A DNA stretch of 5,158 nt, taken from Amoeboradix gromovi X-113 (Eukaryota > Fungi > Sanchytriomycota). The notes below the pieces were generated by a model. It searched no databases. It was given only the letters and a program-made list of their open reading frames with translations, and was not told the origin of the DNA. Where the stretch lies: positions 1-5,158 of the forward strand of contig JADGIF010000687.1 of NCBI GenBank assembly GCA_018985225.1. Reading direction: 5' to 3'. This document shows, one piece after another, positions 1-5,158 of this stretch. Each line of letters opens with the position of its first letter. Positions within the stretch are counted from its first letter, which is position 1. Both the position numbers and the translations under genes were made by a program.

Positions 1-108
1 GATGCAATGAAGCATTTGCTAGTCAAGCATGTGTACCAGGGTGAACTATTTCTAGCTTCTCTGTGGAAACTCTTGATTTTTTAGGAAAGCAGGACTTTGA
101 TTAGTAAC
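1..108 (+). repeat. Repeat copy A (subfamily X): 3' end of a Fanzor/TnpB-type element, candidate omegaRNA scaffold; cut by the window edge
   Basis: 1..86 is the reverse complement of 4554..4639 at 84/86 identity (mismatches at 10 and 74). Similarity continues with small indels through GGAC(T)TTGATTAGTAAC to 108 (partner 4534). The 18-bp core CTAGCTTCTCTGTGGAAA (52..69) is identical in copies B and C and nearly so in D. Confidence 0.9.
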
Positions 109-143
109 TATTTAGTTACAACCACAATTTGTGATTACTTGTC

Positions 144-151
144 TCACGTGA
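144..151. promoter_or_regulatory. Palindromic E-box TCACGTGA (possible bHLH site of the Cbf1/Pho4 type) upstream of the phosphatase gene
   Basis: Exact TCACGTGA about 55 bp before ATG 207. A single 8-mer could arise by chance. Confidence 0.3.
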
Positions 152-206
152 TTTTGTAATTTAGGAGAAACATGACATTGCACAGAAAAGTGGATTTATT
201 TGACTA

Positions 207-1331
207 ATGATAGCGTTCTACATTTTGTTTGCAAAGCTGATCGTAATACATGAAGAAGTAGTTTCAATGGCATCTGCCCAAAGTGAAGTTTTTGAGTCAC
301 TGATGAGATTGAAATCTCATTTTACTATCATGATTGTTGGGTCAAGGGCCGGCTTATCTGAGGTCGAGTCTGTCATTATTCGTACCGGTGATTTGGAGAA
401 TATATTTATAGCTTATGACAACGAGGCAAGCCAGGCGTGCAGAAAGTATTTTGCAGAACTGAGTGGAACCGATCTGGAAAACAGTGCTATAAAAAGTGAA
501 GAGGATTGTGCTATCATGAGTCACAATGGTGAAATAACAGATATTCAAAACGAAACTGCTCAGGATAAACTGCTGCCAAAAATTGAAGGTTTTTTGAGAG
601 AAAATGACTTTGAAATATGGATTTCTCAAGATCACTTTCATGTCAAAGAGATTGAGATTCAAAGCATCAAAGAATTGAAAACGCAAATCAATAATCATAA
701 ACCTGTTATGATACTGGATGTTGACGATACTTTCTGTGGCGTTTCTGAGTATGATGTACACCGTAACCCTAGTTATTATGCAAGACACGGCACTATTGAC
801 TTTATTTCGGGCGCTCAAGTTCATTTTGATGTCTATTTGGTTAGTTTATCCTCAAAATACTGGATTTACCAGAAGCTAACCCAACTTGGTTTGCTGAATA
901 TGATTCAGGATGATCATATCATCGGTGTATATAATCTACATTGCCTAAAGTATTATTATATTTACAAATACGCCCATAAAAACCGCTGCATCACTGACTC
1001 TACATGTTTTATCGAATCAAATGATAATGTATCAGAATCTGATAGGAGAGCAGTAGTGGAAGCATGGCGCTCTTATTTCGATATTCTTGCTGATTATCCT
1101 GCTAAATTTTTGTTATCGATTCCAAGTATTGAGCAACGAATTAAAAATGGTGATTTCGTTATTGTGGATGATAATACAAATCCATATAAAGAAGAATATG
1201 AGCACAAAATTGCACAAGTGGAACCAATGGATGGGAGTGCAGACAAAGTGTTTGAATGGCTTGCCCAAGATGATTTTAGCATCTTAAAATACTTGTCCAA
1301 GCTTCAAGTGGATCCCAAAAATGGATTGTAA
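207..1331 (+). CDS. Divergent FCP1/SCP (NLI-interacting factor, NIF)-like HAD-superfamily phosphatase with an uncharacterised N-terminal region; alternative start at ATG 267
   Basis: 374-aa ORF. HAD motif I VMILDVDDT (D171-x-D173-x-T175, nt 717-731). YARHGTIDFI...FDVYLVSLS resembles the NIF segment KRPGVDEFL...FECVLFTAS (motif II, S213). YPAKFL gives motif III K300 and FVIVDDN gives motif IV (D321/D322). C-terminal QVEPMDGSADKVFEWL...LKYLSKL resembles the NIF tail PI..(W/F).G...D..L..L. The second ATG (267, tcaATGG) has a better initiation context. Confidence 0.75.
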   Translation: MIAFYILFAKLIVIHEEVVSMASAQSEVFESLMRLKSHFTIMIVGSRAGLSEVESVIIRTGDLENIFIAYDNEASQACRKYFAELSGTDLENSAIKSEEDCAIMSHNGEITDIQNETAQDKLLPKIEGFLRENDFEIWISQDHFHVKEIEIQSIKELKTQINNHKPVMILDVDDTFCGVSEYDVHRNPSYYARHGTIDFISGAQVHFDVYLVSLSSKYWIYQKLTQLGLLNMIQDDHIIGVYNLHCLKYYYIYKYAHKNRCITDSTCFIESNDNVSESDRRAVVEAWRSYFDILADYPAKFLLSIPSIEQRIKNGDFVIVDDNTNPYKEEYEHKIAQVEPMDGSADKVFEWLAQDDFSILKYLSKLQVDPKNGL

Positions 1332-1336
1332 TTAAA
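1331..1336 (+). terminator. Putative polyadenylation signal ATTAAA overlapping the phosphatase stop codon
   Basis: TTG TAA TTAAAAA at the ORF end; AT-rich background limits specificity. Confidence 0.35.
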
Positions 1337-1507
1337 AATACTATTTGGGGACTCTGACGGAACCAGTTAATTGAAAGTTGCGATTCCAATTTCACGAAGT
1401 TACTAATTTACAGATTTGAGACTGATGGACAGTCAGACGAAAACTTTAGCTAGGAAATGCACGAGTCTTTGCAACCTGGGGTCAATATTTTATACAATTG
1501 AGGCGCA

Positions 1508-1660
1508 TTCTCCTCGTAAAAAAGTCCTAATTTCCACAGAGAAGCTAGCAATGCTAGATGCTCCGTTACAGTGATTGCTCACGCTTTCACTACCCTGAAG
1601 CAGGATTGAATATGGATGCAGATACTTGATTTAAATATTCCTTGCTGCCATAATCTCTAT
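1508..1660 (-). repeat. Repeat copy B (subfamily Y): Fanzor/TnpB C-terminal remnant plus candidate omegaRNA scaffold
   Basis: Direct repeat of 4946..5118. 1546..1598 is identical to 5002..5054 (53 bp), 1599..1652 differs by 9 substitutions, and D carries an extra 19-bp duplication. Core TTTCCACAGAGAAGCTAG at 1531..1548 on +. Confidence 0.9.
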
Positions 1661-1747
1661 TGTTGCACATGTGGTAAGGTCAATTACATAAGAATTATTG
1701 AATAAATAGTTTACAAGTTTATTTATCGTTGATCTCTTTCTAGGCAT
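1631..1747 (-). pseudogene. Internally deleted, frameshifted Fanzor/TnpB-like nuclease fragment
   Basis: Minus frame reads MPRKRSTINKLVNYLFNNSYVIDLTTCATIEIMAARNI*. The DNA just before the MAARNI ATG is AAT AGA GAT T, i.e. N-R-D shifted out of frame by a 2-bp loss relative to copy D, which restores NRDxMAARNI. YVIDLTTC resembles a collapsed V.IDE..TS..C segment. Confidence 0.55.
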
Positions 1748-2591
1748 TTATAAACACAATTGTTCCATGTTTGGACCAGCTCTCTTAGCGTAGATGAACG
1801 TATGCTGTACCTATCAGTTATTTCTTTAGATTTGATTTACCGTTTGTGAAAATGAAGAATATCGAGTATATTAAATATTGGAAAATGGAAAAGTCTTGAA
1901 ATTATACAAAAATATAAACAAATTCTCGATAATTTATTTATTTAATAATCTTACATTTGGGACATCAAATATAAAAACTGGACTAACTTTCTGAGACAGT
2001 TTGAATCATTATTTCAAGTGTATTAAACGATATTAAATTAAATTAATCTGACTGGATCAAGTAAATTGTTGTAGTATAAAAGCTTTCATCCATCAAAATC
2101 TTGGAAACAATGATCAATAAGAACAGAAAACAGAAACAAGTTATACCAAAGGTAGTAAGAAGAATAAGAAATGAAACAGATAAAGAGTATCGTCTAAGAA
2201 AATGCACCTTTTGCTTAGACACTCAGAGACCTCATATATTTTAAAGAAGGGAATGACATTAATGAAAGAAAATTGGTTTGAAAGAAGGAATTTTATTAAT
2301 AATAGTATTTCCTCCTTAAAGAGCAGCTCCTTTAAAGACGGCTTGGTCTAGTTTTTATATTTGGTGTCCGAATTAGATTATGTTCGAAGTTTGGAATATT
2401 GTACTCTATTGCTTCGCGATATCTTTAGATTGACATCTCGGACTATTGCAATATGCCATATACGAGAAAAATGGAACACATCATTTTGCTTAATTAGAAA
2501 GTATAGTAAGAAGAGCAATTGAAGCGATGAAATTTATATCACGATAAATGTTTTACTCAGTGAAAATTGTTAAGTATGCCTTTATTCAAAC

Positions 2592-2654
2592 ATGATACTC
2601 CGATTTTGTAGAACAAAATTTCTGTCGAAGAGATCCCATTCAACAGTCAATGGA
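2592..2654 (+). other. Putative short mitochondrial targeting presequence of Atm1
   Basis: MILRFCRTKFLSKRSHSTVNG is rich in R/K/S/T and has no acidic residue before D22, as is typical of mitochondrial presequences. Confidence 0.7.
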
Positions 2655-4412
2655 GATCCAGGCAAGGTTGATTATAAAATTTTAAAAATGCTAGGATCCT
2701 ATGTTTGGCCAAAGGACGATCATAAGACCAAAAAAACCGTCGGAGTTGCTATGGGCCTACTTATATCAGGCAAGATATTGAACATACAAGTCCCTCTGCT
2801 ACTCAAATACATTGTTGACCATATAGATCAGCCGAGATCTGTTTTTTATGGTATAATAGGATATGGCGCTGTTCGTACCATGGCGATGTCATTTGGTGAG
2901 CTAAGGAGTGCTGTATTTGCAGGTATTAGCAATCGCACAATCCGGCAAGTATCCAAGCAAACATTTCAACACCTGCTTAACATGGATATGCAGTATCATC
3001 TAAAACGTGAAACTGGTGGACTTAGTCGTGCAATAGACAGAGGTACCAAAGGAATATCATTTGTGCTAAACGCAATGGTATTCCATATATTTCCTACTGC
3101 CTTTGAACTATCTCTGGTGTGCGGGTTGTTAGGTTGGAAATATGGATCTACTTTCGCTGTTGGAACTCTTGCTAGCATCAGTGCTTACACAGTATTTACT
3201 CTATCAACCACTCAATGGCGTACAAAGTTTCGCAGACTGATGAATAAAGCAGATAATGAAGCAGCAACGACAAGCATAGACAGCTTAATAAATATCGAAT
3301 CGGTCAAGTATTTTCAAAACGAGAGTGTGGAACTAAAGCAGTATGATAAAGCCTTGGAAAACTATGAGAGTGCATCTTTAAAAACAATATACTCTCTAGC
3401 ATTTCTAAATGCAGGTCAGCAATTGATATTTACGAGTGGCTTAACATACATGATGTACTTGGCTAGCAAGGGAATAGCAGGTGGATCACTGGGAGTGGGT
3501 GATTTGGTAATGATAAATGCACTGCTATTTCAATTGTCAGCACCATTGAACTTTCTAGGAAGTGTTTACCGTGAGTTGAAGCAATCTTTTATTGATATGA
3601 CAACTCTTTTTAATTTGCAGTCAGATCATCCAACAATAACCAACGGGACTAAAGAGCTGGTTTATAGTCATGGTGATATTGAATTCAGAAATGTGTTCTT
3701 TAGATACGAGGACAAATACATTTTAAATGGGCTGAACTTGAGAATTCCTGGGGGTAAGAAAGTAGCTGTAGTTGGGAGTAGTGGATGTGGTAAATCAACA
3801 CTGTTAAGGATGATATTTCGACACTATGACCCAAATGAAGGCTCGGTTCTAATTGATGGTCAAAATATCAAGGATTGCGATTTTAACTCTTTTCGCAATT
3901 TGCTTGCCGTTTGTCCACAGGACAACTCATTATTTAACCAGAGCATAATGTACAATATCAGATACGGTAATTCATTAGCTACTGACAGGCAAGTTATGGA
4001 TGCAGCCAGGTTGGCACAGTGCCACGATTTAATTGATGGATTTAAAAATAAATATGACACTCAGGTGGGGGAACGAGGATTGATTTTGAGTGGTGGAGAG
4101 AAGCAGCGTATATTACTAGCTAGAGTGATACTAAGAAACCCAAAGATTTTATTGATCGACGAGGCTACAAGTGCTTTGGACAGCCAAACAGAGAAGTTGG
4201 TAATGCAGAGTATAAATAACATTATCAAAATACAACACACTAGTGCATTAATAATAGCACATAGACTAAGTACTGTTAGCGATGCAGATAACATAATTGT
4301 AATGGACAATGGAAAAGTAGCAGAGAGTGGTACTCATGATGAATTGATTAATAAGAAGGGATTATACTTGAACATGTGGAAAGCTCAAGAAAGACAAAAG
4401 ACTGTTAAATAA
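2592..4412 (+). CDS. ATM1: Mitochondrial inner-membrane ABC half-transporter Atm1/ABCB7 (Fe-S cluster precursor export)
   Basis: 606-aa intronless ORF with TMD then NBD. Atm1-typical motifs RETGGLSRAIDRGTKGISF, WRTKFRR.MNKADN, IDSLIN.E.VKYFQNE and GDLVMINALLFQLS.PLNFLGSVYRELKQS. Walker A GSSGCGKS, Q-loop VCPQD, signature LSGGEKQR, Walker B/D-loop LLIDEATSALD, H-loop IIAHRLST. Confidence 0.96.
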   Translation: MILRFCRTKFLSKRSHSTVNGDPGKVDYKILKMLGSYVWPKDDHKTKKTVGVAMGLLISGKILNIQVPLLLKYIVDHIDQPRSVFYGIIGYGAVRTMAMSFGELRSAVFAGISNRTIRQVSKQTFQHLLNMDMQYHLKRETGGLSRAIDRGTKGISFVLNAMVFHIFPTAFELSLVCGLLGWKYGSTFAVGTLASISAYTVFTLSTTQWRTKFRRLMNKADNEAATTSIDSLINIESVKYFQNESVELKQYDKALENYESASLKTIYSLAFLNAGQQLIFTSGLTYMMYLASKGIAGGSLGVGDLVMINALLFQLSAPLNFLGSVYRELKQSFIDMTTLFNLQSDHPTITNGTKELVYSHGDIEFRNVFFRYEDKYILNGLNLRIPGGKKVAVVGSSGCGKSTLLRMIFRHYDPNEGSVLIDGQNIKDCDFNSFRNLLAVCPQDNSLFNQSIMYNIRYGNSLATDRQVMDAARLAQCHDLIDGFKNKYDTQVGERGLILSGGEKQRILLARVILRNPKILLIDEATSALDSQTEKLVMQSINNIIKIQHTSALIIAHRLSTVSDADNIIVMDNGKVAESGTHDELINKKGLYLNMWKAQERQKTVK

Positions 4413-4413
4413 A
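4408..4413 (+). terminator. Putative polyadenylation signal AATAAA overlapping the ATM1 stop codon
   Basis: AAA TAA AAA, with the stop at 4410..4412 embedded in AATAAA. Confidence 0.45.
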
Positions 4414-4503
4414 AAGTATTTTAGACTTCATTTTGCTGATTTAGTTGCGCTAACCAAGGAACACAACAGTTTATGGTTATAACCTAATGTCCCGAATGTT
4501 TTT

Positions 4504-4519
4504 CGAGAAAGCTTTCTCG
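4504..4519. repeat. Perfect 16-bp palindrome CGAGAAAGCTTTCTCG
   Basis: Self-reverse-complementary; ends 14 bp outside the boundary of repeat copy C. Confidence 0.85.
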
Positions 4520-4533
4520 CTTTTCAATATTAT

Positions 4534-4661
4534 GTTACTAATCAAGTCCACCCTCCTAAAAAATCGAGAGTTTCCACAGAGAAGCTAGAAATAGTTCACC
4601 CTGGTACACATGCTTGACTAGCAAATGCTCCATTGCATCCACCGTTGCCTCTTTCTCTTCC
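4534..4661 (-). repeat. Repeat copy C (subfamily X): candidate omegaRNA scaffold and element 3' end
   Basis: Inverted partner of 1..108. Also aligns with B and D: minus GGA AGA GAA AGA..TGC AAT GGA GCA versus GGT AGT GAA AGC..TGT AAC GGA GCA, then a 27-bp insertion, then the shared TTCTCTGTGGAAA core. Confidence 0.88.
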
Positions 4662-4672
4662 AGCACGACAGT

Positions 4673-4945
4673 CTAGTTTAGACCCTCTCTAAGTCTAGAA
4701 GAGTGCGTTACATATCGCTCAGCGATGTCCTGAGTCCTCGAGCATTCTGAGCAAGAGCACTCGGAGACATTTGTCATGGATAAGAAGATCGACAATCGAA
4801 TTTTGAGTTCAGATGCAAAGCTCTAGAATAGCAGGTTGTTCAAGCTGCAAATCATGCAATATATCCTTTATTCAGTTATGTCCATGACTACTAGAGTAAT
4901 CGGGATATCATTAAGCAAGAATTTAAATCTATTCGACTTCAGAGT
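4673..4945 (-). pseudogene. Heavily decayed Fanzor/TnpB-like C-terminal region (Glu motif, CxxC...CxxC zinc ribbon, degenerate RuvC-III)
   Basis: One minus frame reads ...TLVVMDITE*RIYCMIC...SECSCSECSRTQDIAERYV...GLN*. E at 4871-4873, CMIC 4847-4858, CSEC 4742-4753, DIAERYV 4709-4729 (compare DHMAARNI). Two internal stops. The Asp codon lies 92 nt before the scaffold's TGYAAYGGAGCA, versus 87 nt in D and about 85 nt in B. Confidence 0.5.
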
Positions 4946-5118
4946 TTCTCCTCGTTAAAAGTTCTAATTTCCCAGAGAATCGAGAATTTCCACAGAGAAA
5001 TTAGCAATGCTAGATGCTCCGTTACAGTGATTGCTCACGCTTTCACTACCCTGAGGCGGGATTAAATAAGGATGCATATACTTGATGTATATGTTCCTTG
5101 CAGCCATATGGTCTCTAT
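4946..5118 (-). repeat. Repeat copy D (subfamily Y): candidate omegaRNA scaffold overlapping the nuclease 3' end
   Basis: Direct repeat of 1508..1660. Contains the tandem AATTTCCCAGAGAATCGAG (4966..4984) / AATTTCCACAGAGAAATTAG (4985..5004). Confidence 0.9.
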
Positions 5119-5158
5119 ATATCTTCAAATGACACTTTGTGCAGGTTCAGGTTTCTAA
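4964..5158 (-). pseudogene. Fanzor/TnpB-family RNA-guided nuclease, C-terminal fragment (second zinc-ribbon CxxC plus RuvC-III); runs off the window
   Basis: Minus frame 5146..4964 reads TCTKCHLKIYRDHMAARNIYIKYMHPYLIPPQGSESVSNHCNGASSIANFSVEILDSLGN*, matching the TnpB/Fanzor consensus CxxC-x5-RDxNAAxNI. The in-frame TGA at 5147..5149 would disappear if one base were removed (AGA AAC CTG [A] ACC TGC = R-N-L-T-C). Confidence 0.72.

Follow-up and report, generated by a model that had tools for sequence, protein, structure and literature searches.

The 5,158-bp contig JADGIF010000687.1 of the sanchytrid fungus Amoeboradix gromovi X-113, analyzed here in full and called the window (contig C975), contains four short, related loci, A to D. 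An original prediction had read them as candidate omegaRNA loci, in which a constant scaffold is followed by a different guide in each copy, so that together they would form a dispersed guide set served in trans by an intact Fanzor nuclease encoded elsewhere. Our analysis indicates, with good confidence, that each of the four loci is the right-end module of an IS607-type transposon with a present or former Fanzor2 gene, and that two of them, B and D, belong to a family of non-autonomous mini-elements, most of which are probably inert relics.

As predicted, the 13-nucleotide (nt) core TTCTCTGTGGAAA occurs four times in the window as an exact match, on the forward strand in A (57-69) and on the reverse strand in B (1531-1543), C (4571-4583) and D (4987-4999). 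By chance 0.26 occurrences would be expected, and in 200 shuffles the count never rose to four. A and C form an inverted pair, 98% complementary over 86 nt (part of 1-108 against 4554-4639) and 94% identical over 106 nt; for B and D the identity is 91% over a stretch of 124 nt. The predicted 3' boundaries are real as well. Similarity between A and C stops at 108|109 and 4534|4533, exactly where it had been placed, and the end of B and D, ...AACGAGGAG|, is fixed rather than ragged in 86 genomic copies, where a single step takes the information content from 1.3 bits down to 0.05. For B and D the positions needed correction: the right ends actually lie at 1510 and 4948, instead of 1508 and 4946. 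The earlier estimate was 2 nt off because the flanks of B and D, which start with AATGCGCC... and AAACTCTG..., respectively, both begin with AA.

A bounded mini-element family in roughly 600 copies

Across the 10.5-Mb genome the core occurs 592 times, compared with 16 occurrences for a reversed control. A search with copy D returned 738 first-look candidates; 40 were scored, and all have 91-95% identity to D (at least 40 copies at this level). The mini-element represented by B and D is 450-620 bp long and present in roughly 600 copies; by our estimate, IS607/Fanzor2 mini-elements make up about 3% of the genome. A and C belong to a low-copy sister family that has three right ends in the genome, the third being on contig C508, and right-end variants of an intermediate kind are also numerous.

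Comparison of oriented copies defines a bounded unit, whose 5' end is (C)AGCT[CT]GA[CT]T... and whose 3' end is ...GGACTTTTAACGAGGAG. Read from left to right, a B/D element begins with a left end of ~115 nt and the ~40 opening codons of TnpA, which encode its helix-turn-helix; after an internal deletion come the final 60-145 codons of Fanzor2, with zinc ribbon and RuvC-III, and then the right end. Several deletion breakpoints coexist, some of which give an in-frame fusion of TnpA head and Fanzor tail, as at locus L011. An internal segment of ~112 nt is tandemly duplicated in the 560-620-nt forms but single in the 450-nt forms (L008:1142-1711 compared with L004:1258-1711). All deletion variants retain the last ~246-257 nt.

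Neither poly-A nor terminal inverted repeats (TIRs) nor target-site duplications (TSDs) were found in 43 left and 86 right junctions or in the oriented copies. AG is present at both junctions, as C-AG-CTCGATT... on the left and ...AACGAGG-AG on the right, and in 9-14% of the copies the end lies 3 nt further in, at the inner AG of CGAGGAG. In the left flank CAG is 93-98% conserved; its C may be host or element DNA. The motifs CTCGATT and GACTTTT are common to the left and right ends.

Coding remnants of TnpA and Fanzor2

The TnpB/Cas12f zinc-ribbon domain (Pfam PF07282) is found at 560 candidate sites in the genome, each ~100 nt upstream of a core; the best-scoring family copies reach 74 bits, where the cut-off is 26.3. 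The reading frame of the right part, ...LPSFNTSQM...TSQTCTRCG...CTNCHLEIDRDHMAARNIYIKY..., joins this zinc ribbon to a RuvC-III motif (D-R-D-x-N/L-A-A-x-N-I); the tail reads CTRCG...CTNCHLEIDRDHMAARNI and includes CxxC...DRDHMAARNI. In the left part, about 40 residues (...KEITSRYSIHSSTLRNWSKHGRIRCLSTPG...) are homologous to the helix-turn-helix of the TnpA proteins on contigs C459 and C542. On both of these contigs a resolvase adjoins a Fanzor2, making up full IS607-type units (resolvase domain, E = 8.8e-9; zinc-ribbon (TNB) domain, 6.9e-19; HTH_OrfB_IS605 present). The best PDB match of the intact C542 protein and of the B/D tail alike is mimivirus L79 (ApmFz2, 9b0l; E = 1.6e-13 and 7e-12), and the family is closer to Fanzor2/TnpB than to Fanzor1. 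Because of the TnpA head, the Fanzor tail and the structure match, we regard the B/D mini-element as an IS607/Fanzor2 transposon shortened by deletion. Over the Fanzor C-terminus, about 20 of the 150 scored copies still have a frame of 142-150 codons free of stops; it has no start codon at its head and is probably the undecayed tail of the youngest among them.

In line with the original prediction, the loci are right ends of Fanzor/TnpB-type elements, the part in which elements of this type encode their omegaRNA, and they have no working nuclease gene. All nuclease remnants in the window are broken: B and C contain stop codons, and D has a D-to-Y change and is cut by the contig end. Judged by their sequence, the four loci appear to match the 'ghost' concept, with ends and right-end region present (copy B being whole) and the nuclease open reading frame (ORF) left without a usable frame. 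What had been said of such ghost loci is correct and has been published, the guide-repertoire idea included (PMC10432273). Ours is thus a very abundant, well-bounded IS607/Fanzor2 'ghost' family, described under concepts that already exist. In the literature searched we found no paper that joins Fanzor with the sanchytrid phylum, and the genome paper makes no mention of transposable elements.

Nucleases and recombinases in the assembly

Searches with the whole protein and with the first 440 residues found one full-length Fanzor2 in the assembly. This protein, on C542, has 671 amino acids (aa), the ALDPG, LPE and DRD motifs and a CxC...CxxC zinc ribbon. An intact Fanzor elsewhere in the genome, as originally supposed, therefore exists, but is a member of a different family: in their common C-terminal part its identity to the B/D tail is about 50%, and its 3' region has no similarity to the B/D scaffold. 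Likewise, the ends of the autonomous C459 and C542 elements, left and right, are unlike those of B and D. A genome search for a full-length Fanzor2 of the B/D family gave fragments among the contigs inspected, and there are open frames on C373 and C787. The longer copies of the B/D type, on C385 and C565, are broken by stops. In this fragmented short-read assembly there is no cognate intact Fanzor gene for the B/D ghosts, which weakens the idea of service in trans.

Twelve resolvase loci were found, and in four of them (C542, C459, C690 and C787) the matched stretch is free of stops. The helix-turn-helix of the C542 TnpA (L078, about 3346-3447, reverse strand) has an in-frame stop, which could be a genuine break or one of the 19-nt introns reported for this genome. 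The C542 Fanzor ORF runs 100 codons upstream, overlapping the TnpA frame. In the IS607 unit of C459 (L098, C459:8500-13500; 1548-3129) a 233-aa TnpA is apparently intact and the Fanzor2 is interrupted by a stop. This IS607 unit is distinct from a diverged mini-element of the B/D type (L098 690-1276) that precedes it, about 270 nt before its TnpA begins.

By analogy with characterized TnpB/Fanzor2 systems, the mini-elements would have been moved in the past by TnpA acting in trans, through a dinucleotide crossover that is here probably AG, with an adjacent motif of the C-AG type. The right-end module of ~250 nt would encode an omegaRNA, and a transcript running over the right end would take up the adjoining host DNA as its guide. 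The guide of each copy would then match its own empty site only, for homing or retention.

Flanks as possible guides and the decay of copies

If an omegaRNA is made, its guide would lie in the 20 nt beyond each right end. For A (109-128, forward strand) this is ordinary unique DNA: at up to 3 mismatches, a genome search returned the self-match and one match at chance level. The flank of B (1490-1509, reverse strand; AATGCGCCTCAATTGTATAA) is unique in the genome, with one 3-mismatch match, the level seen in controls. The flank of D (4928-4947, reverse strand; AAACTCTGAAGTCGAATAGA), which lies inside the body of copy C, matches itself alone at up to 3 mismatches. For C (4514-4533, reverse strand) there are six near-matches at 2-3 mismatches besides the self-match, compared with 2-4 in controls, and this flank may be part of a low-copy repeat. 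Matching only itself is what the standard model predicts of a flank, because the flank is the DNA beside the copy's own insertion. In other words, the sequences taken for a dispersed guide set are insertion-site DNA, and their differences are the automatic outcome of transposition, as in any TnpB/Fanzor element. Each copy is inserted elsewhere, and variable flanks are therefore no evidence for a guide repertoire.

The copies themselves show no sign of a scaffold that is kept while coding sequence decays. Among 70 copies, identity to the consensus is 92-97% and flat across the last 160 nt, and this even decay looks neutral, as it would after insertion. Nor is the scaffold constant, as had been claimed, given that copy B has lost 19 nt of it (CTCGATTTTCTCGGAAATC, between the core and the right end). 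Mean pairwise identity of the copies is 89%. Some activity appears to have been fairly recent, because a few pairs with different flanks reach 98-99% identity. Most copies, including the four in the window, are probably inert relics of a past burst.

These results bear directly on the reading closest to the original one, in which the ~600 right ends are transcribed and form a working ghost repertoire, their omegaRNAs being loaded in trans by the intact Fanzor2 for homing or for other targets. There are precedents in the chytrid Spizellomyces punctatus, for which a guide 'repertoire' has been proposed and where ghost omegaRNAs lacking a Fanzor gene support cutting by SpuFz1, and in bacterial palindrome-associated transposable elements (PATEs), whose omegaRNAs need TnpB in trans. 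The fixed right-end boundary, the ~250-nt module that is always kept, the presence of one intact Fanzor2 and several open TnpA frames in the genome, and the near-identical copy pairs with different flanks would all suit such a repertoire. Nevertheless, we consider it unlikely. The only intact nuclease differs from the family both in its C-terminal part and in its 3' region, the longer copies on C385 and C565 are broken, the scaffold decays as evenly as the rest and is incomplete in copy B, the guides of A, B and D match themselves alone, and covariation does not exceed that of slid controls (see below).

A related possibility is that the ~600 mini-elements are a still-active eukaryotic counterpart of PATEs, borrowing TnpA and Fanzor2 from a few autonomous copies and using their own omegaRNA to re-cut the empty site. 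We think this improbable. If true, no natural set of Fanzor2 guides served in trans would be known that is denser than the one in this 10-Mb fungal genome. If transcripts spanning the right end exist, the genome holds hundreds of natural pairs of scaffold variant and flank, and such variants could serve to study the co-evolution of Fanzor2 guide RNAs with IS607 ends and the exploitation of a nuclease in trans.

Does the right end encode an RNA?

We return to our preferred reading, that of right-end modules of IS607/Fanzor2 elements, in which the module would encode an omegaRNA. Its length of ~250 nt is compatible with scaffolds such as those of IS607 TnpB and of ApmFz2, which measure 150-205 nt. 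A recombinase site would be expected to need a few tens of bp, much less than the ~250 nt retained. To our knowledge, every TnpB and Fanzor tested so far uses an RNA transcribed from its right end, and by analogy the position of the module argues for omegaRNA coding.

Several results weigh against this reading. The right-end sequences fold barely better than shuffled ones (z-scores of -0.6 to -2.2). RNAalifold applied to 81 copies gave -0.83 kcal/mol, essentially no consensus fold, and applied to 8 diverged right ends, including those of two full-length relatives, it gave 0 pairs. When the structure of one copy was used as the model, 13 double-change cells were counted, compared with 11-19 in slid controls; an Rfam scan of the window also found nothing relevant. 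At the left flank CAG is conserved as described above, but the preference upstream of it, G-N-W-R, is weak and nowhere exceeds 0.66 bits per position.

The reading frame raises a further difficulty. The codons of the core specify F-S-V-E-I, in a frame that is open to 10 nt from the right end, and both the core and most of the right-end module thus lie inside an open frame. An exhaustive protein search identified two full-length Fanzor2 relatives, P0006 (551 aa) and P0007 (604 aa), both from GCA_013565735.1. Their tails are similar to that of the family at the protein level (...SSFQEILQFLH and ...VDFQRILAIH), and their DNA ends in ...CTAGGAG shortly past the stop codon. Most other relatives, including the mimivirus Fanzor2, stop ~40 residues earlier. 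Any scaffold in the clade of P0006, P0007 and B/D therefore sits within coding sequence. With the core in a reading frame, its conservation between A/C and B/D is not assignable to RNA alone, and coding constraint together with constraint from TnpA binding could explain it without RNA. P0006 and P0007 (loci L101 and L102), which are the nearest of the full-length relatives, are found on gene-dense contigs, one of them beside a ricin-B lectin gene, with no TnpA called beside either.

The last point concerns the assembly, which is fragmented at repeats, and in which a full-length cognate element could have been missed. The published assembly (10.5 Mb, 36.27% GC) is a short-read one, made with SPAdes in single-cell mode; the version used here has 10.55 Mb in 1,319 contigs. 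Repeats of the Fanzor2 right-end type occupy both ends of the window contig, and repeats of this kind explain why the assembly breaks into more than 1,300 contigs. Because of such breaks, a cognate element of full length may simply have gone unassembled.

Carried to its conclusion, the argument from the reading frame would leave no role for RNA at all: conservation of the core and the right end would reflect the ancestral C-terminal coding tail of Fanzor2 (...SFSVEILDFLGNQDF) together with recombinase-binding sites. The open frame over the core, the similar tails of P0006 and P0007 with their ...CTAGGAG ends, and the absence of any structure signal in the fold and covariation tests are in line with this view, and CTCGATT and GACTTTT occur at both ends, as recombinase sites would. 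However, we hold it to be very unlikely. The mimivirus Fanzor2 ends ~10 residues past RuvC-III, so the additional 40-residue tail may be read-through of an RNA gene; the middle of the tail is poorly conserved as protein, and by eye there is a local DNA hairpin at that place in each lineage. The same view would also have to account for a retained module longer than a recombinase site needs and for right-end RNA in the systems tested. Identity as a short interspersed element, a long terminal repeat element or a TIR-type miniature inverted-repeat transposable element (MITE) is ruled out by the lack of poly-A, TG...CA, TIRs and TSDs and by the clear coding homology to TnpA and Fanzor.

The four copies and their surroundings

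Contig ends or another insertion truncate A, C and D, which nevertheless present the same right-end module. Copy A (1-108, forward strand) is the last 108 nt of an IS607/Fanzor2 element of the A/C family, cut by the start of the contig. Copy C (4534-4945, reverse strand) is the 3' 412 nt of an element of the same family and contains a decayed Fanzor tail, a frame with ...SSFSVETLDFLGG and stop codons; its internal part matches contig C20 at 94%. Copy D (4948-5158, reverse strand) is the 3' 211 nt of a B/D mini-element. It retains the RuvC-III remnant YRDHMAARNI at about 5081-5143, in which the first D is changed to Y, its open tail frame stops 10 nt short of the right end at 4948, and it matches the intact Fanzor2 by tblastn with E = 1e-4.

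Copy B (1510 to about 1950, reverse strand) had been taken for a fragment only, but is a nearly complete B/D mini-element that can be aligned over its whole length with four genomic copies of 450 nt. It comprises a left end, a remnant of the TnpA head, a Fanzor tail remnant with stop codons and the right end at 1510. The first ~20 nt of its left end are diverged or truncated beside a MITE.

That neighbor is an element of ~416 bp (1957-2372) whose 30-nt inverted repeats (TTGGGACATCAAATATAAAAACTGGACTAA...) are 87% complementary. It is probably a MITE, and it directly abuts the left end of copy B. MITE termini of the GGGACA[CT]C...ATAAAAACT type occur repeatedly within 0-35 nt of mini-element ends, specifically at the left end of B, in the right flank of C (4481-4533) and in the right flanks of L014, L028 and L059. 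L014 and L028 have identical right flanks and different left flanks. The proximity of mini-elements and MITEs may reflect a common insertion preference or nested insertions.

The rest of the window, which has a GC content of 36%, contains two long reading frames. The first, at 207-1331 (forward strand), is a 374-aa open frame with no Pfam match, in which a DVDDT motif (...VMILDVDDTFCG...) recalls phosphatases of the HAD type. The second, at 2592-4412 (forward strand), is an intact half-size ABC transporter of 606 aa with ABC_membrane and ABC_tran domains; judging from this architecture, it may be an ATM1-like mitochondrial exporter. The transporter gene is flanked by the right ends of A and C, both pointing inward.

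Comparison with known systems

The closest parallel is provided by the Spu-1 elements of Spizellomyces punctatus, where 134 ghost elements of ~550 nt without a Fanzor gene have been described, compared with 42 gene-bearing loci (Saito et al. 2023, Nature; PMC10432273). Their 75-nt omegaRNAs support cutting by SpuFz1, and the authors propose a 'repertoire of guide sequences' (PMC10432273). Like the family described here, the Spu-1 ghosts are non-autonomous elements of a zoosporic fungus that keep their ends and the right-end omegaRNA region in the absence of the Fanzor gene, outnumber the gene-bearing loci, and have in each copy its own flank as guide. They differ in being associated with Fanzor1 and in having 30-nt inverted repeats and a CA motif, whereas the present family is of the IS607/Fanzor2 type and has no inverted repeats. 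The present family also has ~600 copies, keeps relics of the TnpA head and the Fanzor tail, and has no cognate intact Fanzor that we could find.

The PATE-like elements of the IS200/IS605 group are gene-less, often encode omegaRNAs that need TnpB in trans, and are mobilized by TnpA (Meers et al. 2023; PMC10055086). They resemble the mini-elements as gene-less derivatives; a trans-dependent omegaRNA and mobilization by TnpA in trans are features that the mini-elements would share. Unlike the mini-elements, they are bacterial, rely on a Y1 transposase and single-stranded DNA 'peel-and-paste', and have hairpin ends. The present family inhabits a eukaryotic host, has ends of the serine-recombinase (IS607) type and reaches a far higher copy number.

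IS607 elements with TnpB or Fanzor2, such as mimivirus ISvMimi/ApmFz2, NlovFz2 and the bacterial ISXfa1, combine a TnpA serine recombinase with TnpB/Fanzor2, lack TIRs and TSDs, and insert by dinucleotide crossover. The family described here resembles them in its TnpA and Fanzor2 coding relics and in showing no TIRs or TSDs at its junctions, and probably inserted by such a crossover too. Their guide RNA of ~150-205 nt extends over the right end, to which the right-end module of the mini-elements would correspond by analogy. In known IS607 elements the crossover dinucleotide is GG, with which the GGG adjacent motif of ApmFz2 overlaps; in the present family it is probably AG, with a C before it. 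The reading frame of the present family, unlike theirs, nearly reaches the right end, so that a scaffold would be inside coding sequence. The described cases have 3-24 copies, compared with the hundreds of mini-copies in Amoeboradix gromovi.

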